Assembly (NCBI GenBank): GCA_965637545.1
Contig: OZ281495.1
Span: 8,060,001-8,124,000, forward strand
Source: Phallusia mammillata
Lineage: Eukaryota
Reading direction: 5' to 3'
Length of the DNA: 64,000 nucleotides
The notes beneath the pieces are model-generated. The model was not told where the DNA came from, made no database searches, and worked only from the letters and a program-made list of their open reading frames with translations. Below are positions 1 through 58,841 of the stretch, piece after piece. Each line of letters begins with the position of its first letter. The stretch's first letter is position 1. The translations under genes were made by a program, and so were the position numbers.

Positions 1-105
1 GAGTTAGAATCTGCAAACAACGAAGAAATGGAAGCTGGCGGATGGGAACGGGATTGCGAATCTGTTTTATTGCGTGAGATAGAACCTGAAAAAAATGTTC
101 TGTGA
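1..105 (+). other. 3' end of an unidentified ORF, probably a transposon fragment in an intron of gene A
   Basis: Open frame ELESANNEEMEAGGWERDCESVLLREIEPEKNVL* from base 1 to TGA at 103-105; no family recognised. Confidence 0.25.
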
Positions 106-323
106 TTGTGCACCGCCAGTAGCCTAATAAATAATTCGTTTAAGCAAATATGGCTATTTGGGTATTTAAATGAAACACTTGCGGTCTCTTAAAACTACTT
201 AGCGGTTACCCAAACCACCTTAAATAAACCTGCATGGGAGAAACAACGCCCAAATGCTATATGCTTACAATGGTAGCATTGTGACGTTGTAGATAGAGGG
301 GATGCTTTGTATTTGTTTTCCAG

Positions 324-4143: not shown

Positions 4144-5297
4144 GTGGTGTAGTAAAATCCAATAAGTTCATTCATATTCGACAACCTGCCATAAACTTTC
4201 GACATATGTTCATGCCCATAGGCGCCGAGTAGGCGGTTGAAGGGTTGCGCCGCCACCTAGGATTTGTAAAGCACGGTGGCAGCCATCAGAGATATTTTGG
4301 TTTGTTTGTAGCCGTATCGTACGAAATATCGTCAAATTTGAAGAAAAACAGGAACAATTTTTCTTTTGAATCTTGTTTATGACGTCAAACACACAACCGT
4401 CTGCCATTGTGTACAATGCGAATGTGTTGTAATAAATAGTACAGTTTTTTTAGGATAGAAAGCAGCAACAACCGGACAAAACATTTTTAAACGTTGCTAA
4501 ATCAATGACTAACGTTATATCAACGTGTTGCAGCACCTACTAAATATTATTTCAAACGTATCGTTTTTTTTCTAATTTGTGGCGAACTTTGTATTCTGTT
4601 TGAGGTTTGTTGGGGTTTGAGTTTTTGTGATTGCACTCATTAGTGACGTCATATTTTACGTCGCCACGTTCCCTTTTTAAAAATTCGGCATGAAGGCGAG
4701 AAGTGGTTCGTAATTTTAAACTTTAGGCGTTAGAGGGCTAAAGTTAATAACATAGGGGCGTATATAACACCGACTGCGGCCAAAATTGAGCCCGAACCCA
4801 AATTGAAAAGTACAATCCGATTGATTGGATCTGGTCTGCTCAATGCTGATGAAAGAGTTTTCGATTGCAACTAAGAAACCCAAGGCCGAACCCGTCCCGA
4901 AAAGCCCGGTCTGATTTACAACTCCGCAGGGTACAAACAACACTTTTTAAAACTTTCTTTCCAAGAAGCTTCGTGGTGGCAATCTGACACTAATGGGCGA
5001 TAGAGAGCCACGTCGTAAAACTCTCCGTCGAATGTAAACTCTCATCTATTACAGAAATCGTGTTTGTATGCTTTACAGGAAATGCCTGGGGTGCAGAAAT
5101 GGTCGAGTGACTCGACTCGAGTCTGCATTTTGTTCACGGAAGCGGAAAAACTCTTAGGACACAGTAGTTATATTAAGTAGAACTCGCTGTAACTAGGTCG
5201 AAATCAAAGATTTATTTGGCCTTATTAATAAGTTGTTAAGTACCGTGAGCTTTGTTGTGATACGTAAGCTTTATATGCTTTATGTCCGACATTTACA

Positions 5298-5665
5298 ATG
5301 ACTACATCGAACAATGATACGCCTGGAATTCCGATGGAGCTTTCGCGAAACGGTAAGTAGCAATATTTTAATCCACCTGGAAGAAAGAGTATACAAAGTA
5401 GAAATGCCGAAGCTATACTACCTTTAAACGGATCAAGTTCGAATTTTTAAATGATTTCATTCAAATCTTAAAGACAACGAAATTTCGTCGTATCTTTTGC
5501 AGAAACAGATCAAGGCATTTGTAAGATGAAAGACAGCGAAAGACGTGAAAAGAAGCTGATGGAAGCATTAAAAGTGTTCAAAAAATCTGAAACTGAGGTT
5601 GTGTCTTCTCTCCCTGCTCCTGATTTTCGCTGTCGGATTTATAGCTTTTTATTTTTCAGTACGAT
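5298..5665 (+). pseudogene. Type-2 (Tyr-less) receptor pseudogene, exons 1-2 only
   Basis: Exon 5298-5352 MTTSNNDTPGIPMELSRN and exon from 5503 ETDQGICKMKDSERREKKLMEALK; relative to intact gene F exon 2 it has lost 5 nt just before the TM, shifting the frame; no stalk exons follow. Confidence 0.8.
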
Positions 5666-6287
5666 AGCGTGAAAGTTAAATCTAAAAATCTAAATCTAAC
5701 ATTTTTTGAGCTATAGCAGGGGTCGTATTTTATCATGGAATTAAAAAAAAAGAAATTATTCTAAATTAAAACACTTTTTTTTTTTACTGACTATCCAAAT
5801 TTTAAAGAATATACTCTATGCCTAAAAGCGTATTATGAACTCAAATGATAATGCTTTGTTAGTAAACAATCAAGCAGGATTGTTTATGACGCTTTGGCTA
5901 GACTGGTGTCATGCTTATCTGGTTTCATGATTTTATAGCATGTAATGACGCAGTGCTAAGTAAATAAAAATGAGGCAAATAGCGTGCCATCATTTATTTT
6001 TGCCAAAGGAATAAACTTTTTTCAAATCAGAAACCCGAAAACAGCCACACCACAAACCGTATAGTGCAGGTTCAAGCTGCTTCACACGCAAAAAAACGCT
6101 CAGTGCAAAATCGCTGGCTTATTCCTGCCTGACATGAGCCCCGAAATCTGCCCAGCGTGTGACCGAACAGAAAAAATAAACAAGCGCACCTACACAGGTT
6201 TAAACGGGTGCACGCGCTACGCACATTGTAAACGGGGCTTCATACTTCGAGTGAGTGATAAGCTTTAACAGATAACTGCCTAACAAA

Positions 6288-9200
6288 ATGAATGCACGAA
6301 ACTGTGACCCGCCTAGGATGGAAATCGTGGAACAATGTTATGGTACGTAAAATTTGTTTTGAGTTATTTTTTATTTGATAATTTAAATTTTAAACCATTG
6401 ATCAAAAATGGTGTTTTCTTGCGTCAAGCGGGAAGAAAAACTTATTTTCAAGGATAAAAATAGAAAAATACGCCATTTTACGGAAAATGTGTTGTTCATA
6501 AAACTGGCGTGGAGATAAATAATCGGGAAATCCGCTTTAGCATCAGCGTGGCCCGTTCGCGGATTTGCCGCCAAGTTTTACAAGTTTGGCTTTTTTAGAA
6601 AGGGTAGACACCAAAAAATGCAACTGGCAGCTTAGAGATATTTTTTGTAAAACTTTGTGGAACTGGTTAATATCATATCCGCCAGCTGTACTGCTAGAAA
6701 TATGTTTAAAGTTACGTTTCATAAAACGACCACCCGTATGTCAGAAATGCTATTGCTCGGCCAATTTATGCAATAATTGATTTAACAAGAAACGAAGATG
6801 GCAATCCGAAAGTTTGTATCGAAAGCGATAAACAGCGAGTGGCAAGGTCAAAGTTTTTAAAGATTTACAAAAATCTTACAGCAGCTAAAGTGCGTGAAAG
6901 TGAAAAAACTTTTGCATGAACTTGTAAGGATGCGTGGTGCAACTTTATAACCATTTTAAGATTTGTTTATAAAATTGAATAACAATACGTATTACAGCCA
7001 GGTGATGCTGTTTTTGGAACTCACTTTTATCCCACTACTAGCCTCACTAGGAAATGACGCTTCCTGTTTTTGTAACTGCGCATCAGTAGTTTTCAAGGTG
7101 GGCGTTGGCAGGCTTGCCTCAGAAAACATCGAGACAACGAACACAATAGACCGGGGGTCACCAAACGTTTTTCACTGCGGGCCGGATGAGTGCCAATGAT
7201 GTTTCACGCGGGCCGCACATTTTACATGCCCTAGCGCCGTCTTTCCAAACTTAGCCCGCGAGGCATTTTTAGGTGCGCAAAGATATGGTCGTTCTACAAT
7301 CCCATTCAAAAAGTAGTCATGCGACTGTTAAACTGTATAATGAGTCTCATCTTACGAGCAATGCATGTATATTACGCCACAAGTGACAAAAGAATGCACT
7401 TGTTTGCGCACAATTAACATTTGTAGTCTTGTCTGTGACGTAACAAACTGGTTTTCGATCAATCCTAGGCGTTATATTCCTATGAAACTCGGTAATATCA
7501 ATTCTGAAAAAAATCCCCACAGAAAAAAAATTGTAGATTTAGGAGTATATTAACGTTTAATGTTATAAAGTTATTAATACAATTTAGCAACTTAAAAAAT
7601 GTGGTCGCGGGCTGGATAAAATGACCTCGGGCCGTAGTTTGGTGACCCCTGCAATGGACGATTATTCTTGAATAAGGCGCTTAGCTAATTAAATTTATTT
7701 AAAAAAAAAGTTTAAAGTCAGGCCCGAATCAGCATCTTTGTTTTAGCAGAAAGTTAAGCCCGAACTCCGCCCGAAAAGTCCGGGCCGACTTACAACTCTA
7801 AGTCGATTGCGTTTGGAGAGCCAAACCCTAACCACAATTTGCGTAACCACAGGACCCGTCTGTTGATTAGGTGGGAAATTGTTTTATAATGCACCTATTG
7901 AAAAAAGCCGGTCTTATTAAACTCCATAACCTTTGTGTGTGGGAGTGAGTGGAAAATTAGTTTGTGTATGGCAGTGGTTCTCAAACTTTTTTGACCGCGA
8001 CCCAAATCTGAGTATTATGAACATCTCACGACCCAAGCCTCAAACATCAAAAAATGTAACAATTTCGAGGCCACGTCGTGGCCGCACTGGAGTCTGCCCA
8101 TGTCAAAATGGCTGCAGGTTTAACGAGTTCGATTCGACAATACTGCATAACACAACACACATTGTGGCTTTGCAGCACCATGATCATTGGTAGAAGTGAA
8201 TCCCAAATCTAAAAAAGGTTCCTTGTACGAATACTTACTAATCCTTGAACGGTAACTGTTACATCTCCACGTTCAGTTTCGCATGATTAACTTTTATTCC
8301 CCGTGCTATGACGTAACAATCGCCATGTATGTGCGTAACAGTACAATTGGAAGGCTATTGGCAGTATTTTGCAATGATTAGTTCGTTTTACTGTACAACG
8401 TGGTCAATGAGTGGACTTTACTACTACTACATTAAGTAAATTCGTTCGTTTTTACTTAATGCAGTAATAGTTCGTTTGGGTAGAATTGAATAGTGATGCA
8501 CCGAACCCGCCTAAAAAGGTTCGGGCCGAAACCGAATATTCGGCCATGAGGCCGAATCAGGCCGAACCTAAATTCCCCGATTTTTGGATGGTTTCAACTG
8601 AACCTTGTGTTGTTGATGCGAGTGAACTCAATTTTGACAAACTAAAATCACTTTCACACTGCATGGGTAAACTTTGCTAAACATCTAATATTTTGCAGAC
8701 AACGTGGCTGGTATTCCATAGATACAACAAATAGTTAATTAATGATGTTTCGTATGAATTTTCAAAAAAGTTCGGGCCGAAACCGAAACATTGGAAAACA
8801 GCGGATTCGGCCGAAATGTTTCGGCCAACTGAAACTTCGGTGCATCACTAGAATTGAACCACCATAGCGCGACCCATTTTTTGAACCTGCGCGACCCACG
8901 TTTGGGTCGCGACCCATACTTTGAGAACCACTGGTGTATGGTAATGCCGACTAACGCTTTTAAGTAAGTAGAGAATTGTTTTGTGCAAATCAGAGATCCC
9001 GACAAAATTGTTTTGTGCAATTGCCTAAAACGTGGCAACCGCTTCGTGTGCGGAATCTTGGGTTACCGTGTTCTTGGTTATAACTTACCGAAACCGGACT
9101 TCTTTCACTGTTATTGTATGCTGCGTATTCGTGGTTCGTACATGTGCCATTTTGTTATTATATATCTTCCATAAACCCCTCGCTACATTTGGTAACCCTA

Positions 9201-12200
9201 AGCGCGTAATTATGTTATTTTTGCAATATGACAGCAGCCGTAAAGTCATCTAATGCTGTAGCCATAAAGTTACCCACGTTTTGGACAGCTCAGCTGCGAA
9301 GTTGGTTTTAGCAAGCAAAACCACAGTTCGCTAGTGTGTTTTATTCATGGTGTTTGTTGTTACTGCTTTATGTGCATTTAACCCACATTGGTACTTGTTT
9401 TCTTCTCCTTCTATGTAAATATTTTTCGATTGATTCTGCAATAAACAAATATCGCTCTAAAAAGTATTACTTATTTGCGAGTTATCGAAATTGTCGAAAA
9501 GTCGAGTATTTTCGACCGCTATTCGGCGCCGATCTTCTCAGCGCACATTTCCTTTAGCCTCATCGATGCCTTCTCCAGCGTTGCACAAGGCAAATCATCG
9601 CAATCAGCGTCTCGCCTTAAAGCTGTTTTTGTAGACACGTCAGTCTATGCTCGAATATTGACCGAATTCCCAGGAATAAGAACTCCACATTTTTTACAGT
9701 CGCTTCCTAAGCATGGAGTTTAGTATTTTTTCCCCCGATGGCAAATCCGTCGCTGTCCTGAGAAGCTCGGCCTCGCTAAAAAGGAATTCCACAACATGCT
9801 GCAACTAGGCATTATTCAAAGTTCTTCAAGTCCATAGGCTTCGCCATTGCACATAGTTTCGTGCGTCGGGTGGCGCCCCTGCGGCGATTAATACCCTCTT
9901 AAAGCAACTACCTACCAGAACTTGGCCGATTGATCTGGCGCGCCTGGCCCATAAAAAACCTTGATCGGAATTGGTCCCCGGGAGCATCTTGGGTTCGAAC
10001 CCCGTGAAAAAACTACCTTACCTGACTCTGACGCTATTTCTCACATTTAGGACTTTTCGGCTTGGTTCTAGTTTTTGAGAAGGTGGTAATTCTTATCGGC
10101 TCTAATTTTCTCTATTGTTATGATGGAAACAGTAGCAAAACCAGAGCTGGTTTTATTTAAATATCATGAACCACTCGGAAATGTCACATTTATATTTCTC
10201 CCTCCGTTTCTCAAATCTTTGCGTCATTCGAAACGTATAACTAATGCTAGTTACATCAAACCAATTTGATCGTATGCTGGCGTAACGCACCTGTCTAATG
10301 TTGACGTCACTGAAAATAACGGAATTTTGATTTGCAAGCTTTTAAAGATAACAGGTCGCACAAAATGTTTAGGCCATTTGAAAGTTACATATGCCGTGTT
10401 GTAATTTTTATGTTGTTGCACTTTGTAGAAACGGTTCAAAGCACCCCCGCTGTGAGAAGCAACGAAAAACTTGAAAAGATGATAATTGAAGAAAAGCGTC
10501 CAAAGCAATCGAAAACTGATGTGGTTGAGTCTAATCTTTGTACTCCTGATTTTCACTGTCGGATTTGTCGCTCTTCATTTCTCGGTAGGACTGTGCGAAC
10601 GTTGATTTCGTCAGAATATAAACTTTAAAACGAGTCATCAAATTTTGCATCTTGTCTTCAAAAAATGACAAAAATTGCTATAGAATAGCAAAAGTCGAAA
10701 AATAATTGTCAAAAAGTGTTTAGTGGGTTCGGACCTTTTTCAAAAGTGCACCTACCGTCTTTTATGTGGCCAAATTAATTTAGCTCTTTACATGCTTGGG
10801 GCATCAAGACTAAGGGTCCACAGAAACGTTTTGTAGTGTTTAAACGTGCTACCAAACACATTTTCCCACTTTACCCTTTTTTAATAACTGAAAGGTTGCA
10901 GTAATACTGTACAACAATAGCAAATCTTTGCTACATGCTACAAACTTACCCTTAGTAACACCTGTTTCAGGCACCTATTTTAGATCTCATATAAAAGGCT
11001 TGATCTGGCTCTCCTGTGGTATATGCAAAACATGCCAAAATACTCATATACATATCAAGGTAGTAGGGTTAAACGTTTTTAACGTCTTATATTGATTTTT
11101 CAACATAAAGAAAAGTCGGCACATCTAATGACATTTGTGTTTTTTTGCCAGATTTCTGCAAAAGTAGAAACGGAAACAAGACGTGGTAAGATTGGATCAT
11201 TTTATTCATTCAGAGTGTTACTATTTAACATTCAATATTGTAAAACAGTCACTGTAACTACGCATTTTGTAGGTTTGGAATCAATTGAGGAGCAACATAC
11301 AAATTACCAAAGTTAGTGACTTCAAAATTTGCTTGATGTTAAGACTTTTAACATGCAATGTCTTTGCGTTCAATACAAAGCTAATGCCAATAGTGTCTTT
11401 GGAAATCCTTAGCCAATAACGTGTTTTAAGTCATGCACGGTGAGAACGAGGTTTAAAAGTGGTATTTCATACAGAGATAGCCCTTATCTTGATGGTTGTT
11501 GGATAATTTTGTGAAACATTTCTTTACATCTGGTCACTGCGCATTTTATCCATTTTATAGTTCGACCAAAAAACATGCAACAGAAAGTCTTCTCCGCGTT
11601 TATGTTTTAAACGTATCGGTTTCAAGTCATAATTAACTATTGTCGTGTATCCATATTTAAACCTTACTTTCTTTCATTCAGCAATGAGTGCAAATTGTTC
11701 GAGTCGTCTCACCGCAACAAACATCAACATCGTAAACATTCATACATCATTGGCAGCTTTGAAAGGTAAAATTGATTGTCTCGTTATTAATGTACCGTTT
11801 TAGGCTCTGCAGAGGGGTGATACTGCGATGCTGGCAATCCTACCAATGTATAAGTTTATCTTGCGAAACTTTCGACACCATATATCTGCGCATTTTTCGC
11901 GACATACGAATTATCAAAGTTAGTGACCTAAAAAATTGCTTGACTTTGAGATTTATAAACCGTAAACAGGCAGTGTATTTGCATTCTACACAAAGCAATT
12001 TGCAATAGTGACGTTCAAACAATTTTATTCACTACCGTATTTTAAGTCATACGCACTGCGCATTCGGCAAAACTTGGAGCTTATAAGTTATTTGAAGTTA
12101 TTCTGCAATCATGTTTTATGCCAGCACTTGTATTCCATCACAGGCTACAAACGATTGCTGGCAAAAAATCCTTAAACCTTATTTATGTTTAGTCGAGTCT

Positions 12201-15200
12201 GTTGTGCAACTTGCTGGAAAAATATTTTTGAAAGGAGTTTATTAACAACTGTTAAATTCGTTTCAAAGAAGAACAAATTTAAATGTGCTTGATGATGTTG
12301 CCAAGAAGTTCAAACCATAACCGATTGGAAACATATAATAAAAAAAATAATTGCTTTGCTATTGAGCGAGAAAATCGAGGTGTTGAGTCAAATAACTTTA
12401 AAATCGTTAGTGGAACTAGTCGGTTGTACAATTGCAGAGGTTCCCAACCTGTGATACGCGTTTTTCACAACAACCTACACAAGGAATGTTCTCCAACAAA
12501 CTTTTGGCCCAGTATGGTCTTTTCATATTCAACGCTAGCTTATCATGCTGTTCCACAGCTACTGATTTTTCCTGCCACGTGGAAATGCGAGCAGGGATTT
12601 TCAGTAATGATAAACATTAAGTCAAAAAATCGAAACCGGCTAGGTGCACCCGGAAATGACTTTCGATGCGCTGTTACAAAATTTACACCGCGCATCAACC
12701 AATTGGTGGACAGTAAACAAAAACAAAACTCCCATCAAATTTAGTTGTGGTGCTTTAGTTTTATTTTATTAGGCCAATATTATTCTCTGAACAAAATATG
12801 ATTCGATCAAGTTAGTTGTTCTGCAAGAAGTGGTACTCGTGGCAGAACAGAGGCGCCCAAGTTATACGAAATCGTAAAAAGGTTGGGAACACCTGGCCTA
12901 TAGTTATCATGGATTTTAGGTTGTGGAATACCAGGTTTGTAACACACAATTTTATACTTTTTCTACAGCAGTTTGTTTGGACTTTGAAATGAAATATTTT
13001 GAGTTTTTTGGTAATTGTTTGGAAATTTCAAATCCTAGGTCAACTGGAGAGAAATCTAAGTTCGCTGTCAAGCAGTTTGAAATCATTTCAGGAGCAACAA
13101 TATTGTCAAGGTCAGTGACACACACGTCTGCTCAAAAATATTTAATACTGTTTTTTTACATAGCTATATTTCGGCCTTAAGATTTATAATGATATCTAAG
13201 CTGATTTTTTAGCATAATAAACTCATCAGAATGCAAAGTAAGATTTTTTACAAACATTATGCAACAACAACTATCATACTGTTTAAAAAGAATATTAGGC
13301 CACTGACGTTCTGTCTGCAACAAGTAGACACGCCATCAAGGGACGGTTTGTATGGATACAAGTTTGAATACAAACCTACGTTCCAAATGATATTGTGGTA
13401 CAAGAAACACAGCATAAAGTGATAACCTTACCCAATAATCGTTGCTATTTAAGCCACTAGTTTTTGTCAAATGTAACACTCAAGGCAAGTATAAACAGCA
13501 CACACTGGTTTACGTTTAGCCTTAACCTAAGGGACATAATGATTAATAAAAAAAAAAACGGAGAATGGGTGGTTTCATCCTTGTTTTGCAGTTTGGATAC
13601 CTTTTACTTGTGACTTTGAAAGTGGTTTGTGCAACTTTGCTGATGATTTGAGCGCCAATTTTACTTGGACAAGGCATTCCGGGTCCACATCCTCAAGTGA
13701 TACAGGTCCAAGTGTAGACCATACACTGGGAACTACTAAAGGTAGTACTCAAGTATCTTGCAAGAAAAAAGGGAGAATTAATCAACAATACTAAAAAATG
13801 CCACATAACTTTTACATTTATGCCAATCTAACTCCTTAAAAACACACTCAAACTTGTTTAATTTATTAAACCACAACCTGACAATAAAACGGAGTGAAAT
13901 AGCCTAGTTTTAAATTAGCTTGATACTTTGTACTAAAACCAAATTAAAAAACAAAAAAAATACCAAAAGGGGCAGAATATAGTTTTATTTACTACCTTCA
14001 TTTCTATTTTTTGAACAGGTCGCTACATGTACATAGAAACCAGCGGTCCTCGACAATTGCTTGACAAAGCAAGACTGGTTTCATCAATGTTGCCACCAAC
14101 CATGGGTACAAGTATAATATTTTTTTTTCTCATAATTACTTTTACTGTTGGACATAATACAGTTATTTGTTACATAATTACTAAATTTTACACAAAATGA
14201 AACAAACATTTCTAAATAAACAGATAAAAGTAATAACCAACGCACAAATATTAGACAAAGGCATATTTGCAGGTTTAAAGGTTTGCAAACGCAATATTTT
14301 ACAATTACAATGAATTTGGTAACGTTTGCAGTTTTTCGTACTCGTTAAGCTTGTCCAAGTTCATGTTTAAGACTCAATATATGCGTTTTAACTTGTTATT
14401 TCTGTGCTTATGTGTTTTACAGGATACGTTTTGCAACTTACATGAAAAATATTGATATTTTTACAGGTCGTCTTCAGTTTTACTACCATATGTATGTAAG
14501 TATTACTTAGTAGAACAATGGTTTGCAATCTGTAAGTCAACACCTCATGGGGGTCGTTTGCCATTTCCGTGGGGGTCGTGAAGGATTTTGATAAAAAATC
14601 CAAAAAGTTAAACATTTGTCAGCATTTAAAAGTAAAACATTTAGTACGATTTTAGTAACACCTAATGCAGTGGTTCTTAACCTTTTTGTCTTTGCGGACC
14701 CTTTTCGATGCTGTAAGATATTAGTCACAATGCATTTTGGTATGTCGCTTTTGAAGAACGTTTTCAAACAAGTTTCAATGTAACTTAAAACGCCAAAACG
14801 TTTTTTTAAACCATGATTTGTCAATTTCGTTTTGCGCGAATTAAGAAGTTGTCGCGGACCTCTGAAAACGCTATGCGGACTCCAAGAGGTCCGCAGGCCC
14901 CCGTTGAGAACCACTGACCTAATGGGTACATCATTAGCTTATCCAAATACATAAAAAACGACACAGATCTGTTTGCATAGGGCAGCCACATTGGGACCTT
15001 GGAAGTCTATTTAAAGAGACCAACTCTTCGAAAGGAAGTAGTATGGACCCTGAGCGGCAACCAAAGTAAGAAAATATAGTTTGTACCGTTTGACAAAACA
15101 AAAAAAGTGAGGCTAGTTTAGGAATTATTATTTTTATTATTATTATTATTATTATTTTTTTTTAGGGGGGGGGGGGGTATTTTGATGTACATTCAAATAT

Positions 15201-15479
15201 ATTTTTTAGCGGTGGTTCGTGTGAAACAGTAAATTTTGTACCACAACCACCAACATACAGTAAATTACATCACACCTAGGAACGCCTACTAGGTTACTTT
15301 CATTTTGTATGTGTTACATTAAAAACTAAATCATGTTATCAGGTGACGTTTGGTCGTTGGGAAACGCCACCATTACTTCCACGGAGCCCTTCCAGGTTGT
15401 GTTCGAGGGAACAAGGGGCACAGATTTCGCAGGGTACATTGCGATTGATGATGTAACAATCAGACCTTTTAACTGTTGA
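6288..15479 (+). CDS. Gene B: type-1 type II membrane protein with stalk and C-terminal MAM domain; one frameshift in exon 2 (possible pseudogene or internal-start product)
   Basis: Exons 6288-6342 (MNARNCDPPRMEIVEQCY), 10429-10584 (156 nt vs 161 in C/D/F; TM LMWLSLIFVLLIFTVGFVALHFS in the shifted frame), 11152-11185, probable 11273-11311, 11682-11765, 13039-13110, then MAM exons 13592-13741, 14019-14105, 14467-14495, 14981-15065, 15343-15479. All exons after exon 2 are stop-free and phase-compatible. Confidence 0.75.
7152..7651. mobile_element. hAT-type MITE
   Basis: TIRs c(g/a)ggggtcaccaaac; 8-bp TSD caatagac/caatggac. Confidence 0.8.
7972..8933. mobile_element. hAT-type MITE hosting a nested MITE
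   Basis: TIRs cagtggttctcaaa; perfect 8-bp TSD gtgtatgg. Confidence 0.9.
8491..8850. mobile_element. Nested hAT-type MITE
   Basis: TIRs tagtgatgcaccgaa; perfect 8-bp TSD gaattgaa; a partial copy of the same family lies near 53350-53420. Confidence 0.9.
9030..10075 (+). mobile_element. Degraded Ty3/Gypsy LTR retrotransposon
   Basis: LTR-end/PBS-like ..taca-tttggtaacc at ~9187; gag N-terminus MTAAVKSSNAVAIKLPTFWTAQLRSWF*QA from 9228; RT N-terminus KLGLAKKEFHNMLQLGIIQSSSSP*ASPLHIV..WRPCGD* at ~9760-9890; many stops and deletions. Confidence 0.85.
12435..12895 (+). mobile_element. Internally deleted hAT (Buster/Charlie-like) element retaining the transposase C-terminal dimerisation region
   Basis: ORF segment LLIFPATWKCEQGFSVMINIKSKNRNRLGAPGNDFRCAVTKFTPRINQLVDSKQKQNSH; TIR-like ends cagaggttcccaacc / caggtgttcccaacc; no clean TSD. 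Confidence 0.8.
14668..14916. mobile_element. hAT-type MITE
   Basis: TIRs cagtggttct; perfect 8-bp TSD acctaatg. Confidence 0.9.
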
Positions 15480-16295
15480 TTTCAATTGTATTATGACGAC
15501 ATACACGTGAGGATTTAAATTTGATGCCCGAGGAGACATTTTTTTCACAATTTTGTTATTTTTCTAAACATGTGATTCCATCTTTTAACACTTACTTAAC
15601 ACTGATAGTCCAATCACCACAAAACTGAATTTTTTTTTATATTTTTTTTAACTGAATAGTTTTACCAAATACAAACTAGTTTAGCCTTCTTCGTATAATA
15701 AATTCTCATAAACGCTGCTGCGTCCAAGCTTAATCCTTTTTGAAAAAGTAGTTATTACTTAATACTTAAATACTTTGTACATGTAATACTTAATACTTGT
15801 AGAAATGGTTTTCAACGTAATTTCAACATTGTAAATTTTTATCTAACGTATTAAAATGTTTAATGTGACCCAATGTAAATGTTTGCATGACCTAGATGTG
15901 TAAATAAACGGTGTGACATGTAAAGGTTATTATTTGAGCTGGTTTGGAAATTAAGCAAGGATCATGAACAGTGTTTTCCAAACGTTTTTGCTGTAACCAA
16001 ACGCAGATTTCGTTATCGTTTACTTTCTGTAACTTCTCGTGCGCCTTTTCATGTCGCTTCTTTTCCCAACAATATTTTTGTGGGACAGTCGCTTTGCCAC
16101 TTATGTTTACGATAAAAGAACATGAAACTTTGACGAATGTGTAGTGCTTGTCTAAACAAAAAAAGCATATTATGAAAGTCGAAACGCTGCGTTGGGATCA
16201 AGCGAAGACGATGAGATGGTAATTAAGGCAACTATTCTATTTAAATAAGGTGCTGATAAAGTTAAACGTGCTTTGGTGACGTATATAGTTGTTTA

Positions 16296-18345
16296 TGGAA
16301 TGTTTGCGAGATTGATTTTGTTTGGCCCAAATAAACTATTTAAGAAGCTTATATTAGGCATAGTATTTGCGTGAATAAAAATCTGGCTGATATCTGCAAA
16401 TGTATCTACAACGCAAAACAAAATATTTCACTATGAAAAGAAATATTCGAAGTATTGTGCATAAAATAAAATATGATTTTTATAAAATCAGTCTCACTGG
16501 CGTGGAAAATCAAATGATATTTGTGTAATCTTCATAAAAATCATATTACAAAACTGTTACACGTCATCTGGACATAAGTGAGATAAAAAGTGCAACATAT
16601 TTACGTGTTATGTCTGATTTATTCATCCAAAATAAATACAGCTAAACAAATAACAGTCGATAATACGTGTAAGCTATGTGACTCATTGCACTTTTTTTTT
16701 TCAATTGGGTAAACATAATTTTTGGCAAAATTAGTGATAAAGATTGTTTCAGAGTTTACTTCAGAAATGCTATATTTCAGAAATGTTCTTTTGTTGTCAG
16801 TTTATTTTTGTGTTTACGCACAGGACCGTTATTTTCATGCAGGCAAGTTACTTCAAAGTTGGTTTTATTGCAGTTTGTTACACTTTTTATGTAGCCTTAA
16901 TCAAAAACAACAACAACAATTCTATAAGAACTAGCAAATTTATAAGTGTAAAAGTGATGTAACAAGCTTGTGTTAATTTTGGCGTGCAATGAGATTAACA
17001 TTTTTATGTGACGTTATAGTTTACATTTATATTTTTTTTAAAGTGTTTAAATGAGATTTATCGGGTTCTACAATATTCTACAATATACAAATAACAATCA
17101 TAATACGGAAAAACTTAATGCACTGCATGGGCCCATCTTGACGTGGTTTGTTACACGAAATATGTTTTAATCACGATTTGCAGCCCGCTACCAGAATCTT
17201 GGATGTTGGGCGGATCAGCGTGATGTGAATGCGATCGCAAATGCAGAGGACCATCCACTGTACAAACACGGCAACTACAAAGCACGCCAACTGGTCTTCA
17301 GCAAGTGCGCGAGAGTAGCAGCTAATATTTCAAGCACAATATTCGCCATACAGGTACATTGCAGTGCATGTGGTCATCTATAGTTTGAATAATTGCGACA
17401 AAGTTCGTCAAAATTTTGTGTTTTCGACCACAAATGTTTGGACAGGACGGAGGTAAATGTGTCGCCTCCTGCAATGCTGAATCGAGATACAAAATGTACG
17501 GAGAGTCCACGGATTGCCATGTCAACGGAAGAGGAGGTCCATTAGCAAATCAAGTTTACTGACTTATTACAAGCACCAGAGGTATACATGCTTTGTAGTA
17601 ATGCATGAAGACATAAAAAGTTGAAAATTCCTACGCCCGCTATAACGATAAACCTTAAAAAACAATGTTCTAAAGTCGATTATCGCTGTAACGCCCTGTA
17701 TCTATCGCTGTAACGCCCTGTATGGTGTTACTATGATTGTGTTGGCTAGTGTGTCATATTACCCATATGACAAGTTTTATATATTAGCCTGGCAACATTT
17801 CGACATTAATGACAATATTGTTGTTTGTTAACTACTGTTTAACCAAAGTTAAAACACTTTTTAATAACGAACATAGTTAAATTTAATGATATTGGGCAAG
17901 TAACTTCCTCAAGCAATTGACTTATAAACTCTTAACATTTTCCATGTACTTACCATTACATGCCTATTCACACCAAAACAATATGATATTTTCCGAAAGG
18001 AAATTAGACAAAAAATCTTTTTTGAGACTTATTTGTTGCAGTGCACCTGATCGACCTTGGATGCTGGAAAGACAATTCTACGTCGTTCGCAATCCCTAGT
18101 TTAGAACACGACTCTCTCTTGGCTTTCGAAGGTTGCGCAAGAGACCCATCGAAAAGTGTGTCAACGCCGCCTTCAAGAACGGATACCAAGTTCTAGCTTT
18201 GCAAAACAGTGGACGCTGCCACAGTTCTGCGAACGCCAACGAAACTTACCAACAATACGGTCGTACATCAACATGTGCACATCAGGGAAACTTTTCAGCC
18301 AACCGGGTTTATCAAATACAAATTGACCCCAAGAAAATTGAATAA
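16296..18345 (+). pseudogene. WSC-like tandem two-domain pseudogene, copy 2
   Basis: Frameshifted and interrupted signal exon from 16296; exons 17184-17353 (RYQNLGCWADQRDVNAIANAEDHPLYKHGNYKARQLVFSKCARVAANISSTIFAIQ), 17446-17581 (DGGKCVASCNAESRYKMYGESTDCHVNGRGGPLANQVY*LITSTR), 18042-18345 (HLIDLGCWKDNSTSFAIPSLE..[frameshift]..PIEKCVNAAFKNGYQVLALQNSGRCHSSANANETYQQYGRTSTCAHQGNFSANRVYQIQ). Confidence 0.8.
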
Positions 18346-29900: not shown

Positions 29901-32900
29901 TGTCGTGTATTCCCATGTTAACATGTTTCTTTCATCTAGCAATGAATGCGAATTATTCGAGTCGTCTCACCGCAACTAACAACAACATTGAACATATGCA
30001 AACGAGTTTGACAGCTTTGAAAGGTAGAACTTTGTTACCCATGTTCCATCATGGTGGTGTTTTAGGCTATGAAATTCTACACGCAACCTACTAATGTAGA
30101 CGTTTATTTTGGCTAAAGAGAACTAATGTGCGAAACTTCAATTGGACACTCGTACGCGTTTAACCATTTTTATTTGATTTCAAACGCGTGACTCCGTGAC
30201 TAGCGGTTTGAAGTCGATTCAAAAGAAACATGAAAAGTATCAAAGTTAGTGACTTGAACATTTGCTTCATTTTAAACCGGTAACATGCAATGTGTTTGCA
30301 TCCCATACAAATATTTTTACAATAGTGTCATTTCGTAAACATAAACCATTGACGTATGTTAAGAGTCATACATGGTGGGAATGTGGTCACAGAACGCAGA
30401 GATTGTTGTTGAACAAAAAACAGTCAGAACATTCATTCGATTGAATACTTGCTGTCGTGATTTGCCAAAAGTGGCTAACAATAAGCATTTTTACCAAAAT
30501 CAAAGCCGAGCTGGAACAAAGTTAATTATCATGAATATCACGTGACTCCTGATACCAAAAAACTGCTTTATACGAAACCTTCCACAGAATAATTCATCCT
30601 GAAATAGCGACAAATAAAGGTTAAATAAATTGATTGGTGCAAAATAACTGGATGATAAGGTTTCGTAAGGCGTTTGTTCTTAAAGTAAATAATGGAAAGT
30701 TGCACCGCATCGAAACAAAGTTAAAAAACTTCCTTAAATGGGATTGATTGTTGAGTTTCGAGTCTTGGTTGAAGTCTGCAAAGCTGATTGTCAGTTTATT
30801 ATAACAATTTTTCAATACATATTTTTTTCCAACGTCCTGCAAGCTTAACTAAACTTGAGTAAGTTATTACATGTCCATAACGGGCACATATTTTTTCATT
30901 GATCCTGCGTTAAGAAGATAAATGTTCATGTTATACTCTAGTTCAGAGGCCCTCTTCTACATTTTTGTGCTGCTCATTCTTAGTGATTCCTTTTGACACA
31001 GAAAAAGTGAAATCAGGTGGTTTGTAACATTATTGTTTACTTCGTTTAGACACATTGCAAAACAACATGTTAACCATGGAAGCAAAACTTACATACTTAC
31101 AAGGTAAAACGAACACCCAAAATCTCATATCCTTATTTACGTTTTCATTTATGCGGATCTAACTTACTATGGTGTAAGTTTTAAGTTTGTTTCTAAACAA
31201 AGTATTACCATGAATATTATAACTCAGTATTAAATGCTTGTGTTTTATTTAACTCTTAGTAAGGTACGGTACGATTTTTTTTTTAAAAAAGTGACTTTTA
31301 TTTATTTTTGAATTGTTGCCACAGATTACTTGGGCATAATTTCCGCACAAGTCACTTCGGGGATTGAAAGTAAGTTTATCTTTACGTTCTCACCCCAATA
31401 TCTGATCGATATGACGTGACCCAAGACCTCTGACATTTTTACCTCACCAGGTGGTTTTGGAAAATAGTAGTTTAACCCGCCATACCGTAAACTACGCAGA
31501 TAACAAAATTAAAAGCAACGACTTTGAATTAAAATTTATTTATAGTCACGTAATAAATTTCAATCGACTGTTGTATATCACCAATTTCTCTTGCAGACTT
31601 TTCATTTTTTGATACCCTTTCAAAATCTGCGTCAAGCATCTTTCCCAGCAGTTTGCCCAACTACTATCGATATTATTACGACGGTGGTAATTACTATATA
31701 AGTGATGGTGGAAATAATATGTACGACTTTGGAAATGAGGTACAATGTTATGTAGTTTAAATTGGTGCCGACAGAATTTTATTGCAGATTTATTAAGTTA
31801 TATATATTGGCACGTAGAGAAACAACAAAGATAATAAGATATACTTTTTTGTAAATTAGATTCGAGTGGGGACAGACTCTGGACGTTCAGTGTACGTCAT
31901 TTACAATACGACCTACAGGTAGGTGTCACTTTGTCACTGAAAATGACATAAAAGACACGTACAAAGAAAAAAATGAAACATATTTGGCCTGGATGGCATG
32001 TACCACTGGCATATGATGTAGCCTACCTGACACATATTTTGTTTAGCGATCCACTGGGCAATTTTTTGATGGTATGCAAAGCTGGGCATCCATTCGTCTT
32101 GTCCATGTTGGTATTAAACCGCGATGGAGAATCTCGAACGTATAACGTCTTGGTAACATATCAATAACATATCTAAGTTTGTTAATATGATTTTGCTTTC
32201 AAACGCACAGTTATAATATATATTTTAGTCGATTGTCTGATCATTACAAAGTAGAGTATAAATATAAAGTCAAGTTGAAACAAAAATGCTAAAACATGTT
32301 TTATCGGAAAGTCAAAATTGGTTTTATTATGTTTCTGTCGTAGTTTGTAACCAGACGTTCCGAATCGTTCTTTTGTAGAAGTCGATTTTGAAACATTACT
32401 TTTGTAGGAGAGTGGCAATTTGGGAGCAGACGGCACAGGAAACTACAGTTGGGATGCTGGATCTTTATTGGTTGGATCATACAATATACAATACGTGTTG
32501 TATCAAGTATACGGAGCCGGCAATCCTTCCATCATACAGATATTCTTCACAGTGTCAAGTCCAGTGAGTGAATGAGTAAAATATTGTCATGCTGTTGCCT
32601 AAAATGATTAAACTAAATCTCCAATAGCATAAACTTGTAAGGTGCGTTTCTAACAAGTAAGAAACTTACCTTCAAAACTTGCTATGCGCAAAGAATACCC
32701 TATAGGTCTAGACTAGAGTATCTCAAAAAGAGGACAAATCCGACAAATGTGCCAAATTCAATTAAAACAAAAAAAATTTGTTGATCTGTAACAATTCAAT
32801 TCATGGTAAAAATAGTAAAAACGCACGTATGTTTCGGTGTGTCATTTTCTCAAACATTTGTATGATTAATTTTGCTGGGATTTTAAAATTTGTTTTAAAA

Positions 32901-36040: not shown

Positions 36041-36211
36041 TCTCTGACACTAGATGGCGATAAAGAGTCATATAGCTCACGGTCAATAAAGCGAAATGTG
36101 GCGTAACTAAATCTGAATCGATGCTTTATTTTGCCATAGTCATGCGTTGATAAGTACTGCGAGGTATTTTGTTTTAAAGGAAGCTTTACACGCAGCTGTC
36201 CGAGATTTACA

Positions 36212-36264
36212 ATGACACGGACAATGACACGCCTGGAATTTCGATGAAGTTTTTTTGCAAAACG
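36212..36264 (+). pseudogene. Type-2 receptor exon 1 relic
   Basis: atgacacggacaatgacacgcctggaatttcgatg..aaacg|gtaag, frameshifted homolog of gene F exon 1; no exon 2 follows. Confidence 0.75.
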
Positions 36265-49950: not shown

Positions 49951-52900
49951 ATGAATTCACGTAACTGCGACCCGCCCAAGATGGAGATGGAGGAAAGTTA
50001 TTATGGTATGTAGCATTTGTTTCATTTAACTTACATAAAGTTAAAGTATAATCCCTTTGCTTGATGCGGACCTGAACGTTTGGTTTTTCTAAGACGATGT
50101 TATGTTAACGCAAAATCAGATCAATTGATTTATAAGCAATTACGCAAACAGGTTACTTTTCTCATCCCAAGAGAAATTCCCGCCCCCTGTTCTCCATCCC
50201 GCCCTTTTAAATGCAGTGTGGTGAAAAATTAACATCACAGACAAAATGCTAACATAGCGCATTTTCGTAAAGACGTCTTTACAATTATTATGGTTTTAAT
50301 AAACGGTCGCTTAACATCTCAACCCGTTTTAACTGTTTAGTTTTGGTGACCGTGTTCTTTGAGATTCTCAGAGAGGCGATTGCATCCTTTCAGTAATAAT
50401 AAAGAGTGACTTGAGTGGTAGGCAAATGCAGAAGAATAGTTGTATTTTACCGTGTTCTTTGCAGAAACGATTCGCAGCATCTCCAAGTGAGTACATAACG
50501 CATTTGCGCAGTACTGAGAACGTAATTCATTAACAAACTTTTAAACAGAACAGATCGCATAAACATCTTTGTTCATTCTTAAGTTAGATATGTCGTGTTA
50601 TCATATTACTGTTGTCTTGTGCTTTGCAGAGAATATTGCCCCACCGGAGCAAAGCACCACCAGAGTGAGAAACAACGAAAGCACAGAAAGCAATCGAAAA
50701 TTGATGTGGTTGAATCTAATCTTTCTACTGCTCATTTTCACTGTCGGATTTGTCGCTCTTCATTTCTCGGTACGAATGGGCAAAAGTTGATTTGACAAAC
50801 ACTAAAAAAGGGTGAAGAACGATAATTGTCAAAATGTGATAAGCTGTTTCTAAATTTTTGGGCCAAAATGGACCTATACTGTCAGCTTTTTACGGATTTT
50901 AAAGTTTGCACTTATTTTGGTTGTTGGGCATTATAGGCAATTTATGCACGTGTTAATAGGCATCAAGGCAAGGGGCCACAACACTTTCAGCATTTATATG
51001 TACCGCTAATCGGATTTGTTTCTTTACACTGCGTCATTTTCTATAAAATATTGCACATAGCACAACAACAGCGAAATATTTTAAAGTTGTTTTGCTCTAT
51101 TCTTACCCCCAGTTATAGGCTTCTAAATCTTAGTGACAATAGGGCCAATATAAAAAAATTGATTGTGCCCTTGCCTGCGGTCTAGGTAAAATGTACTTAA
51201 ATAAATATTTTTCAATACTCAAATATCAATGTAAGGTGGTCAACCTTTTGTAACGACGTAGCCCATATCGGTTTTTAAACGGGACGACATGCTAGCACTA
51301 TAAAATTACATTTGTTTTTCATTAGATTACTTCAAAAGTGGAAAGGGAGTGTAAAAGTGGTGAGATAAGACCATTTCCTTCATAAACTGTGTTATAGGTT
51401 TATATTTTAAAAATTTTTAAACGTTTGCGTTAAATTGCGGGACATAAACGTCCTCAAATACCCTAATTACATATTTAAATGTTTTAAAGCCGTTTTAAGA
51501 TTAACCTCTAAAAACTTATTGCCAGTGTGGCGATATTTTGCACCAAAATGTTTCAACATAATCCAAGCATTGATCCATATTACTGTCGTGTATTCACGAG
51601 TAACTCAACCCAAATGCTTCTTTCATCCAGGAATGAATGCAAACGATCTACAACATCTCAACACTACGAACAGCAACATCAAGTCCATTCAAACGATTTT
51701 GACCGAATTGAAAGGTAAAACTTTGTTAGCATATAGCCTCGTTTTCTTGGCAGTAATTTAAGTTGTGGAGTAGTACCAGCAGTTATGTCATGTCACAATT
51801 TATTACTTTTAAACACAATTTTTATTTGAAATAAATATTATTATTTTTGTTATATTTTTAATATTTCAAACCCAGACCAATTGGAGAAAAATCTAAGCTC
51901 GCTTGCAAGCAGTTTGGAATCAATTCAGGAGCAGCATTCAAGTTATCAAGGTCAGTGTCACAAGCTTGTAATAATCATAACCATCATCCAACAAACGTGG
52001 CTTAACAACCGATGGCTGCGGAATAAAGATTTTAGCACAGTCTTGTGCATTCGGGTGCAACTACCATCGTTTTTGGCCTATGTCCCTGTTAAGTTTAACT
52101 TTTTTGGTTTCAGACTAGACTGAAATGGTGTAACACGAATCACGAAATGCCAAAGGGTCATGTACATCATGTGATTTGCATCAACAAATTTATTGACCTA
52201 ACAAATGGTACAATGTTCCACTTTGATTCTCATTGGGCGAAAAGGCATTGAGCTCAAGCTAAAACCCACCCCAACAGGAAAAGCCCAGCTCGGTTTACAA
52301 CTCTAGTTCACCCGCTGGATTGTCTCCCTTTTTATTTTTTATAAATCGATGACATAACTTTAATTCAGCATACCTCTGGGTTAGAGCAATGGGGTTTAAG
52401 CGTTAGTTTTCTTGAGGAAACACAAGTCCTAGAGAAATAAATACTGTTCGCCTAAAAATAGCACAACACTTTGGCTTTGTTCTTTTCCAAACATTTCCCG
52501 GAAACAAAGAGGACCACGAAAAGTTCACTTATAACACAAACTTGTAAGACTTTTGCAACGCGTATTTCCGTGTTGGCGACGCAACGCAAAGCCTGTCATC
52601 TTCGTTTTTGCTAATCTATTGGTAAGAAACTTTGTAGCACAATATGTCTTGTAAGTTAATTCTTGTCTGTTTCGTTCGTCCACAAGTTATAAAATGTATG
52701 CACAATAAACAGGTGAAATTTTGTAATTTTTTTACGAATTGTCTCAACAGATAACTTGACCAGGCTCTCATTGATCGCTTCAGAAAGGCAATGTCTAATA
52801 CAAAGTAAGTTTGTTACCGTTATAATCAATTTAATGACGTGAGGTGCCAATGAGGCTATCTTATAGCAACAGACAGCAACAAATGTTGGGCTAACAAAAA

Positions 52901-55829
52901 TATAGGTTTAATTTTGTTGAAAACAAATTCTCAACCAAAATTGGTAATCAGCAATTTTTATAAAGCAAACACTTTTTGAAGGTAATTCATTCGTCGATGC
53001 ACTTTCCAATTTCTCATCAAGCATCTTTCAGAGCAGTTTGCCCAATTACTACGAATTTAATTACGACGGAAATAACAATTACAGCATAAGTGATGGTGGA
53101 CATGATATGTATGACACAGGAAATAAGGTACAGTGTTATGTAATTTGGACTCATACGTTTATTGGTTTGAATTTTAAAACGTAGGTGGACAATGAACAAT
53201 AGGATTTGTTATTTTTTTGTTGACTTTGCTTCAAGTGTAAACAGTATTTTTTTAAACATTTAGCTGAAAGTCTGGAGAAACAACGAGACGAAAGTGCAAG
53301 TCATTTACAACTCGACTTATACGTAAGTGCCACTGTTGCAGAACATTTCCACTAGTGATGCAACGAACCCGCCTGAAAAAGGGCCGAAACCAAATATGTG
53401 GACAATATATGACCGAACCTAAAATCTTTTTTTAAAGAATGTTTCTAACTAAACCCTTTATTGTTAATGCAGGTAAACTAATTTATGGCACTTCAAACAA
53501 GTTTTACAAACCGTAAGCCACATAAAACACGAAATATTATGCAGACGACGTGGCTTCCAGACGCATAGATTAGTTAATTTGTGACGTTTTAAGTTGGTGA
53601 CACTGAAGTTGAAAACTTAGTAATCCAGCCCTGTTAAATACGCTGTACCAAATCAGCCAGTTCGGTTTAGGCTAATGGTTCTCAACTGATTCTGATCGCG
53701 TATCAATTCCCGGCTTTTCTATCGTTTCGTACCACCTAAACCCTGTTCGAATGGGTAGACCAAGAAATAGGCCTACTTTTTTGACCCTGCTAACATAACT
53801 CTGAAACCAGCAAGGTTAGCAATTTCAAAAACAATGCTTAGGACACGAAATTTCGAAACCAGGCCTGATCAAAGTGGGTTGCAGTTCTTCATCTAAATAG
53901 AATAAGGTATAGCAGAAATGCACTGGCGTACGAGCGAAAAAGCTCCGCCAGATACTACTAGAGGTTCGCCTACCAAACGTGTCACGGAAAAAAAAAACTG
54001 GTATTACAGGTGTCACGGAAGGTATTACAGGTGTCATTGATGAATGACTTAGTTTGTATAACACGTGTCACTGGCAGCTAATTGTGGCCTTACAAGACAC
54101 GACTCACTAAAAATTGGCTCGGCCTGTGTTAACTTGGCACTGAAATATGACTTGCATGGCAGGTGTCAGTGACGAAAGAATGACATATTAATCGTGACAC
54201 TTTGATCATTATTGACTTCACGCTTTTTTATTCTGTTTATGACTCGAATTCAAAAATGGTTTAAAAGACACAATATATTTCGTTTTGTTTAGCCATCCTC
54301 AAGGCTATTTTTCCATGGTTTGCAAAGCGTTGCACCCATTCGTCTTATCTATGCTGGTGTTAAATCCTGGTGGAAGATCCTGGCAGTATAACATCAAGGT
54401 AACATGTCAATGATACAACGCATACTTTAATCTGATATGTAGGCCATGCTTGTCATTAAAGTATTCCTCAAAGCAGTGTTTTGCAAAGTATTGGCCCCGA
54501 CCTGAAGTTTTGTCGCAAAAAGTGTTCTAGCCTATTGGTATTTTAAAATTTGTAACCTATATAGTAAACCAACTGACAGTGTAGTGCATTCTTGCGACGG
54601 TGTAAACTAGTTTTTCAGCTAACTGCAAACTGTTCAGTTTTCAGTGTAAAAGTGCAACTCAGTGTAATGCAATCAACCCGCCTTAAAGTCGAATTTTCTG
54701 TAAAACATGACGAATAATCTGGGTCGATTCTGGCGTCGGAGTTTTGATGATATCTTCAGTCTAGCAGTTATTACAACTGATTTAAAGGATCCTTAGTCAA
54801 GTTTTTTTGCACTTTGCGACAAAATATACTTAAATAAGAAAGTTCAACGTATTTTATTACAAAAAAGCTGCTATAGAGTGTTTAAAATTAACTATGTTTT
54901 AGGTTGATGTTTTCAAAACATCTGTTGTATTTTTAAAACATGCATTAACAGGAAATGGGTGATTTGGGAGCAGACGGCAGAGGAAACTATAATTGGAGTA
55001 CTGGATCTTTATCCGTCAGATCATTTAACATACAATACGTGTTGTATCAAGTTTATGGAACCAGCGATCCTTCCATCATACAGATATTCTTTGCAGTGTC
55101 AAGTCCAGTACGTAGATACATATATAAAAATTAAACGTGTATATCACAAGGAAATGAATTATTTCAAAGATAATAGAATCAGCTCCAGCAACGTACATTT
55201 GATTGTTTAGATACTTGGCTCGACAGGATCCAGTTCTCTACATTATGTGGATTCGCAGGGAAACACACGAGAAACCGATCACAAAGTCTACATTTCAGGG
55301 ACCGCTCACAACGTCTACTTCAACTATATTCTAATATCCACGTAAGAATTTATTAAGCGCTTTCGGGATATTAGTCATAAAGAAGTTCTGTCTTTAAATT
55401 GTGTGCAAGACGCACAAATGTTTTTTGGGGCCTCGTGTGTGATTTGTAAATCCAAAATGACTTGGAAAACTGAAAGGTTAGCCTTTTAGCTCTTTTCTAA
55501 TTTCCTTTTAAACCTAAGCTAAACACACACGCAATCAACAGGAAAATATATTAAGGCAGACAAATTCAAATTTCCTGCATCTTCCGTCACTACAGGCACC
55601 AATGAGACAATAGTTTATGCCAAACAAAAGGATAATTTACTTCATCTACCGAAACAAAGTCGACGCAATGTAAAAAACGTTTTTTCGAACGATGCTTAAC
55701 GCGATTCATTTTAGTAACGCTCTACGTTTATTGTTTGCTTTTATTCAGCCAATCTAATGTCATTTTAGGTATCCATCGTCTTATGTGCCAACCAGTACCG
55801 TTGAAGCGATCCTGCCACAGATTTTTTAA
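49951..55829 (+). CDS. Gene E: type-1 type II membrane protein with the uncharacterised head, 366 aa, intact
   Basis: Exons 49951-50005, 50630-50769, 51326-51359, 51631-51714, 51876-51950, 52751-52804, 52982-53127, 53264-53322, 54293-54398, 54952-55107, 55211-55341, 55769-55829; 1101 nt, no internal stop. Tail MNSRNCDPPKMEMEESYYENIA; head motifs YSISDGGHDMYDTGN, CKALHPFV, GDLGADGRG, YQVYGTSDPSIIQIFF. Confidence 0.85.
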
Positions 55830-58840: not shown

Positions 58841-58841
58841 A

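Follow-up and report, generated by a model that had tools for sequence, protein, structure and literature searches.

Gene B, in which a short stalk exon (Y3) leads into a MAM head, is likely a mosaic of paralogues from a gene family whose tails, necks, and heads have been re-assorted many times. Y3 itself is one copy of a family-wide stalk module, Y, and is not specific to B and to gene E, where the homologous exon is followed by another stalk exon and an unnamed head (UH). An earlier, sequence-only reading of this DNA had explained the difference between B and E by a head swap in the intron behind this exon. The homologous exons, the fit in phase 1, and re-assortment within introns stand from that proposal, but the sister pair, the single crossover, and the exact site do not. 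The window analyzed here is the plus-strand stretch C2:8060001-8124000 (64,000 nucleotides), and positions without a prefix follow the numbering of the window.

Gene family and tail types

Judged from its DNA, the family comprises about 35 genes on one chromosome, forming a large tandem group and encoding putative ascidian type II membrane-anchored proteins. Its genes are laid out as a short tail, a TM helix, a neck of phase 1-1 mini-exons, and a C-terminal head, which is either MAM or UH; the modules that we mapped are exon 1, the TM exon, the short exon, and the neck exons X, Y, and Z. The TM exon encodes basic residues followed by a hydrophobic stretch of about 23 residues, which, together with the C-terminal head, suggests a type II topology. 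Single-exon protein searches identified at least 13 close MAM heads as well as about 22 copies of UH on this chromosome, distributed over two blocks, one on the plus strand (7.95-8.17 Mb) and one on the minus strand (8.50-8.82 Mb). Our sample consisted of the window, 150 kb of flanks, and four 10-kb loci, 254 kb of the roughly 900-kb family region in all, and 16 of the roughly 35 members were compared. A literature search on ascidian type II transmembrane MAM-domain proteins returned no description of this family.

Three tail types, defined by the TM exon and the stalk, were distinguished, and each of them was found with both heads:

E-type tail: UH head in E and E2; MAM head in L020
C-type tail: UH head in C and D; MAM head in G16, G6, A2, and B
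F-type tail: UH head in G5, G15 (gene F), G17, and L019; MAM head in B2 and probably A

Three stretches of the window (5119-5417, 36103-36321, and 59218-59516) were considered as a shared 3' flank and rejected, as they correspond to the F-type first exon and its surroundings.

The Y module and the head of gene B

The features of genes B and E on which the comparison is built are as follows:

10429..10584, plus strand: TM exon of B, of the C/D type (from an alignment with 8 paralogues and a tree)
11682..11765, plus strand: stalk exon X of B, 84 nt, phase 1-1; similarity to B2 and G7 begins here
12877..13038, plus strand: intron stretch of B 5' of Y3, making up the 5' side of the Y-module island; its homologue in E is the complete X-Y intron (51717-51875)
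13039..13110, plus strand: stalk exon Y3 of B, 72 nt, phase 1-1
13111..13591, plus strand: Y3-to-MAM intron of B; both ends resemble other family genes, the middle is found in the B type only
13592..13741, plus strand: MAM exon 1 of B, 150 nt, phase 1-1; Pfam PF00629 positions 1-44, 31.6 bits
14019..14105, plus strand: MAM exon 2 of B, 87 nt; Pfam MAM positions 43-82, 15.7 bits
14467..14495, plus strand: small MAM exon of B, GRLQFYYHMY, phase 1 to 0; conserved with A at 1359-1409
14981..15065, plus strand: MAM exon of B, GSHIGTLEVYLK...SGNQ, intact (from an alignment of 7 MAM genes)
15343..15479, plus strand: last MAM exon of B, ...IRPFNC then TGA; Pfam MAM positions 112-157, 39 bits
51631..51714, plus strand: stalk exon X of E
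51876..51950, plus strand: stalk exon Y of E, homologue of Y3 of B, 75 nt, phase 1-1
52751..52804, plus strand: stalk exon Z of E, 54 nt, phase 1-1; also in the MAM gene L020 and in F-type UH genes
52805..52981, plus strand: pre-head intron of E; similarity to L020 stops at about 52832
52982..53127, plus strand: first UH exon of E, phase 1 to 0

The Y exons of B and E are homologous and share their donor, as had been claimed. In a self-blastn comparison, positions 12983-13122 matched 51825-51962 with 77.6% identity over 143 nt (E value of 1.9e-22), and both exons follow an ag acceptor and end in g before a gtcagtg donor. Once split codons are allowed for, their translations, QLERNLSSLSSSLKSFQEQQYCQ in B and QLEKNLSSLASSLESIQEQHSSYQ in E, agree with the earlier ones; Y3 shows a heptad-like spacing of L/F and has one NLS glycosylation sequon. 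A more sensitive alignment extended the match to 12877-13122 versus 51717-51962 (70.8% over 260 nt), so that it includes the exon, the X-Y intron of E in full, and the first 12 nt behind the donor. Upstream of 12877 in B, we found neither similarity to E nor a remnant of an X exon. The similarity between the two genes is an island of roughly 250-300 nt, from 12877 to about 13175, and, because Y3 sits in this island between unrelated flanks, at least two breakpoints are needed in B. A single crossover in the Y3-MAM intron, as formerly envisaged, leaves the one upstream of Y3 unaccounted for.

DNA searches of the genome detected at least 12 copies of the Y module. Y3 of B is 97% identical to that of B2, 88% to that of G17, 86% to that of L019, and 82% to the Y exon of E; between B and B2, the flanking intron is 73-83% identical. 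All of these module exons have lengths that are multiples of 3, namely, 72 and 75 nt for Y in B and E, 54 nt for Z, 84 nt for X, and 150 nt for MAM exon 1. The two Z exons of gene C (Z1, 54 nt, and Z2, 45 nt) have ag acceptors, gt donors, and an open frame in phase 1, like the other neck exons tested. Exon phases were read from the splice sites in the sequence.

What follows the Y exon in each gene was described correctly in the sequence-only reading: in B, it is the phase-1 MAM exon at 13592-13741 (31.6 bits over Pfam MAM positions 1-44), and in E, it is the phase-1, 54-nt stalk exon at 52751-52804 and then the unnamed head exon at 52982-53127, which has no match in Pfam. The exons of B were scanned singly (the Pfam PF00629 cut-off is 26.4 bits), and together they cover the MAM profile from position 1 to 157. 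The last of them ends in the stop codon TGA at 15477-15479; thus, the MAM domain is the C terminus of the protein. Y3 and all five MAM exons have intact splice sites and frames in both B and B2, and they are predicted to be spliced into one mRNA, the joins being drawn from splice signals, open frames, and conservation.

The intron between Y3 and the MAM head is composite. Its first 12-63 nt resemble sequence 3' of other Y exons, and its last 28-44 nt resemble sequence 5' of MAM in other MAM genes. The interior (about 13175-13555, searched as 13140-13565) occurs only in B, B2, and G7 genome-wide; it was considered as a transposon, a candidate that we rejected on finding 3 copies in the genome, all in B-type genes. 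No homology was found when the intron (13111-13591) was aligned with the corresponding stretch of E (51951-52750), an alignment from which the end of the homology was to have been located: the local score was 14 versus 16 +/- 2 for shuffled sequences. In B2, compared with F-type UH genes, Y-type similarity stops 44-186 nt past the donor and MAM-type similarity begins at -39. A breakpoint of the B-type genes does lie somewhere in this intron, but the junction is not exact, as about 230-390 nt of the intron can be assigned to neither side.

Nor is the junction private to B or younger than a split of B from E. B2, located at C2:7988-7992 kb, matches B at about 77-96% from exon X (11682) to past the MAM head, and the match is unbroken (84.5%) over 12896-13798, which takes in Y3, MAM exon 1, and all of the intron between them. 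The arrangement of Y3, intron, and MAM recurs in G7, a decayed copy. Together, these observations place the Y3-MAM junction before the split of B, B2, and G7.

Ancestry of gene B and exchange of heads

The nearest relatives of E are E2 and L020, and those of B, from exon X onward, are B2 and G7. A tree of the segment from the TM exon to the short exon (930 columns) contains the groups (B,(C,D)) with support of 96/97, (L020,(E,E2)) with 100/100, and (A2,G6) with 100/99. In approximately unbiased (AU) tests on this segment, a group of B, E, and E2 was rejected (p 3e-7), as was a group of B, E, E2, and L020 (p 0.019); B and E therefore do not form the sister lineage that had been assumed. Individual exons agree with the tree. 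The TM exon of B is 82-89% identical to those of C-type genes and L020 versus 69% to that of E, its short exon is 82-91% identical to those of C-type genes versus 71% to that of E, and its X exon is 81-88% identical to those of C/D, A2, G6, G7, and B2 versus 67% to that of E. In a sliding comparison, B is closest to G16, G6, C, D, and A2 over 10400-11400 and to B2 and G7 over 11600-17000. This change of affinity, from C-type genes to B2 and G7 within one gene, makes B a mosaic.

Exon 1 and Y remain as the places where B may be related to E more specifically. Exon 1 was previously reported as most alike in B and E, which holds for the peptide (13 of 19 residues, versus 11 of 19 for B with D or G16) but is weak for the DNA, where D is at 81% and E at 79%. 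A tree of exon 1 with 60-nt flanks weakly places B beside E, E2, and L020 (81/85), with B on a long branch. The tree of Y exons divides three ways, into (B,B2), (L020,(E,E2)), and the copies of the F type; grouping B with the E-type genes is neither favored nor rejected (p 0.32). Specific common ancestry of B and E in the Y exon and exon 1 is possible, and the likeness of B to E appears to be limited to the Y island and perhaps exon 1.

Across the family, tails and heads have different histories, which bears out the claim that they were re-assorted by recombination within introns; the separate trees proposed earlier as a check for incongruence do conflict. On the tail tree, a single clade of MAM genes was rejected (AU test, p 3e-8), and a TM-exon tree of 15 genes requires at least three changes of head on well-supported branches alone. 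The MAM heads form the tree ((L020,(A,A2)),(G6,(G16,(B,B2)))), in which all branches are well supported, and the UH heads separate into (C,D) and ((E,E2),(L019,(G17,(G5,G15)))). A2, for example, groups with G6 by its tail and with A and L020 by its head. Between E and E2, similarity amounts to 94% for the tail segment and 81% for the head region.

In two lineages, the place of the head exchange can be read directly from the DNA. E and E2, which have UH heads, are colinear with L020, which has a MAM head, over 3.4 kb at 75-77% identity, introns included. The colinear stretch begins 5' of exon 1, includes X, Y, and Z, and ends about 28 nt past the Z donor, beyond which L020 continues with an A2-like pre-MAM intron and then the MAM head. 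The head boundary of the E lineage is thus not at the Y intron, where it had been placed, but past the next exon, Z, at about 52832 in the comparison with L020. Similarly, C and D (UH) are colinear with G16 and G6 (MAM) over 2.7 kb, a stretch that includes the last neck exon and about 160 nt of the intron behind it. Counted from the head exon, stalk-type similarity stops at -62 in C and -68 in G16, and head-type similarity starts at -48 and -44, respectively, which narrows the C-lineage join to 14-24 nt. The corresponding feature in gene C is the narrowest head boundary in the window:

31540..31554, plus strand: head boundary in gene C; stalk-type resemblance to the MAM genes G16 and G6 ceases at about 31540, head-type resemblance to other UH genes sets in at about 31554

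It lies 43-57 nt before the start of the head exon at 31597. The junctions of the E, C, and B types are thus at three different places in the pre-head intron, which argues for independent events; likewise, the presence of both heads with each of the three tail types implies at least three exchanges, each within the phase-1 pre-head intron.

Several of the genes compared are damaged. In the TM exon of B, a deletion has removed 5 nt after 10489, so that the tail is out of frame with the TM helix, and the conserved donor of exon 1 is in phase 2 in the frame proposed earlier, whereas the conserved acceptor of the TM exon requires phase 1. L020 has lost its Y acceptor (AG to AA) and has GC as its Z donor, G7 carries deletions, and A2 has lost the donor of exon 1. 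The frameshift in B and the damaged splice sites in other members indicate that some of the compared genes are pseudogenes and that part of the family is decaying.

Re-assortment, its alternatives, and known systems

The neck exons all end in phase 1 and both head cassettes begin in phase 1, and rejoining within introns therefore keeps the reading frame. In the explanation that we favor, recombination between paralogues would re-assort tails, neck exons, and heads, by way of unequal crossing-over, gene conversion, or the edges of segmental duplications; we infer both this mechanism and the direction of each exchange. B would have been assembled from a C/D-like segment reaching from the TM exon to the short exon, a B2/G7-like X exon, a Y3 exon within a 250-300-nt island akin to the Y modules of E-type and F-type genes, and a MAM head whose nearest relative is that of B2, followed by that of G16. 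The Y3-MAM junction would have arisen once, before B, B2, and G7 diverged. A recent duplication illustrates the kind of event that may be involved: at least 21 kb, from 44000 to beyond the end of the window, match C2:7960333-7985626 at 85-97%. On its right, this duplication ends within the F neck array, about 2.4 kb before the X exon of B2. It supports exchange between tandem paralogues as the probable mechanism.

We consider it very unlikely that B and E are sisters whose heads were exchanged by a single crossover in the intron after Y. On the one hand, homology between the two genes extends over the Y exon, its donor, and 160 nt of the intron before it, their exon 1 peptides are the most alike (13/19) and their exon 1 sequences group at 81/85, and a clade of the B Y exon with the E-type Y exons is not rejected (p 0.32). 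On the other hand, B is sister to C/D from the TM exon to the short exon, where grouping with E is rejected; its X exon is far closer to those of other genes (81-88%) than to that of E (67%); B2 and G7 carry the same junction; L020, the closest MAM-bearing relative of E, retains exon Z, so that the boundary in E is one exon further along; and F-type Y exons are as near to Y3 as that of E (G17, 88%; L019, 86%; E, 82%). Loss of an exon from a gene like L020, with the order Y-Z-MAM, is likewise a very improbable origin of the B-type arrangement. Z would have been removed by an intronic deletion, leaving the Y donor as the deletion scar, and it is true that this order exists in L020, that symmetric exons can be removed with the frame kept, and that the Y and Z splice sites of L020 are weakened. 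However, B and B2 have MAM heads of the G16/G6 clade, not of the A/A2 clade to which L020 belongs, and the similarity of the B intron to the Y-Z and Z-MAM introns of L020 is confined to 36 nt following the donor and 31 nt preceding MAM exon 1; no remnant of Z was found in the B-type intron of the copies tested.

It is possible, although we hold it to be rather unlikely, that a gene with a MAM head already in place acquired the Y3 module in its last intron as a block, comprising the exon, about 160 nt of 5' sequence, and as much as 186 nt of 3' sequence, which an E-type or F-type gene would have donated through duplication or gene conversion. Such an insertion would explain why the Y3 island is flanked on both sides by unrelated sequence. 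It also accords with the decayed Y copies (Y' and Y2) that B and B2 already hold directly after X, in the place where E and C hold Y, and with the [X,Y] units that are repeated inside other members, such as G5 and A2. Two successive crossovers fit the same data, however; target-site or duplication scars were not found; and the flanks unique to B, B2, and G7 match no source genome-wide. A further alternative, fairly improbable in our view, is that Y3 and the MAM exons of B do not belong to one working gene, being either a dead copy or separate transcription units. The frameshift in the TM exon and the phase conflict between the sole donor of exon 1 (phase 2) and the TM exon acceptor (phase 1) speak for it, but Y3 and the five MAM exons are intact in their splice sites and frames in B and B2, and Y3 is 97% conserved against 73-83% for its flanks. 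This alternative bears on the present function of the gene and leaves the evolutionary reading aside.

The cluster might also be a combinatorial receptor system, in which selection, rather than neutral turnover, favors repeated exchange within introns, in parallel with immune or allorecognition gene families; three tail types and two unrelated heads would then persist as cassettes available for re-assortment, each head cassette beginning about 45 nt upstream of its first exon. We regard this possibility as unlikely.

Re-assortment of this kind has a well-known precedent in the exon shuffling of phase 1-1 symmetric modules in animal extracellular proteins, which follows Patthy's rule. Classical cases are ancient and have been inferred from domain boundaries only. 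What the present family shares with them is neck exons in multiples of 3, phase-1 introns, phase-1 head acceptors, and breakpoints in introns; what differs is that the exchange took place between tandem paralogues and can be traced in DNA, with the similarity of flanking introns still visible. The family is thus a rather clear instance of a known process, phase 1-1 exon shuffling, and, unlike in the ancient cases, its flanking intron DNA still records the join sites. With both heads present in each of three tail lineages, the family offers a clean natural case, in a chordate relative, of domains being exchanged with the frame preserved. The results also correct the interpretation of the match between the exons of B and E, which marks a common neck module rather than a recent exchange of heads in a sister pair. 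Annotation of these genes should treat the tail, the neck, and the head as separate evolutionary units.

Two groups of known proteins invite comparison. Type II receptors with necks include scavenger receptor class A, MARCO, and COLEC12, which have SRCR or C-type lectin heads, and the neck-repeat lectins DC-SIGN and CD23. Like these, the proteins predicted here have an N-terminal tail and a signal-anchor TM, then a heptad neck that is glycosylated and encoded by small repeated exons, and a head at the C terminus; in both, related stalks bear different heads and the genes are in tandem clusters. However, the heads in our family are MAM or unmatched in Pfam, not SRCR or CTLD, and a collagenous segment is absent. 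The resemblance would therefore be one of layout only, and we do not claim membership in these receptor families. Known MAM proteins, such as meprins, RPTP mu, neuropilins, and MDGA, are mostly type I or secreted and combine MAM with other domains. The head exons of B match the same PF00629 profile, from position 1 to 157, whereas here a single MAM domain is at the extreme C terminus of a stalked protein of predicted type II topology.

Reading frame of the membrane-anchored part

Compared with six of its paralogues (C, D, G16, G6, A2, and L020), gene B lacks 5 nt in its transmembrane (TM) exon (window 10485-10495), and this deletion puts its TM helix out of frame with its cytoplasmic tail. Gene B may be a pseudogene, or its translation may begin at the first codon of the TM helix, an ATG. 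At the matching site, E and its paralogue E2 have a deletion of 33 nt, which is in-frame.

The frame is also at issue further upstream. Exon 1 (MNxRNCDPP...; window 6288-6346 and 49951-50009, and paralogues) ends in a conserved GT, which lies in phase 2 in the frame of the sequence-only reading and is followed directly by an in-frame stop, whereas the TM exon has a conserved acceptor that requires phase 1. Given this mismatch, either a small exon would be missing or exon 1 would be an upstream ORF that is conserved.

Duplicated and decaying neck exons

Besides Y3, the stalk exon directly before the first MAM exon, gene B contains two further copies of the Y module, one on each side of the X exon:

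Window 11273-11311: Y1, a half-length Y exon of 39 nt (LESIEEQHTNYQ), 5' of X
Window 11899-11920: Y2, a decayed Y duplicate, 3' of X

These copies show that neck modules in B have been duplicated internally. The Y copy of gene C (..SVTSGLKSIQKKHEKYQ; window 30180-30244; equivalent copy in D) is without a usable in-frame AG acceptor, and may be a dead exon in a gene that is otherwise intact. In L020 (C2:8635001-8645000, minus strand), which bears a MAM head on a stalk of the E type, the Y acceptor is AA rather than AG and the Z donor is GC rather than GT; both neck exons are symmetric, and splicing may skip them or they may be in the course of being lost.

Segmental duplication and possible recent exchange

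Over the 3' 280 nt of the intron between Y3 and MAM (window 13273-13553), B shares 96% identity with B2, a paralogue with the same Y3-MAM arrangement, compared with 90% for the adjoining MAM exon and approximately 76-83% for the remaining intron. A recent conversion event may have produced this segment, or it may be an element conserved within the intron.

Two orphan F-type 5' ends were found, each consisting of a MTTSNNDTPGIPMELSRNG-like exon 1 and a TM exon that carries a frameshift:

Window 5268-5681: between A and B
Window 46570-48303: between D and E

A similar fragment also precedes E2. Separately, window 3-232 is a short interspersed repeat with more than 30 copies (89-95% identity) across many chromosomes.

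On a larger scale, window 44000-64000 and beyond matches C2:7960333-7985626 on the same chromosome at 85-97% identity. This match marks a segmental duplication that is recent and at least 21 kb long, and it takes in the 3' end of D, an F-like fragment, E, and the 5' portion of F. On its right, the duplication ends within the neck-repeat array of F, just 5' of the B2 stalk and MAM exons, and this juxtaposition may create a chimera of an F tail and a MAM head.
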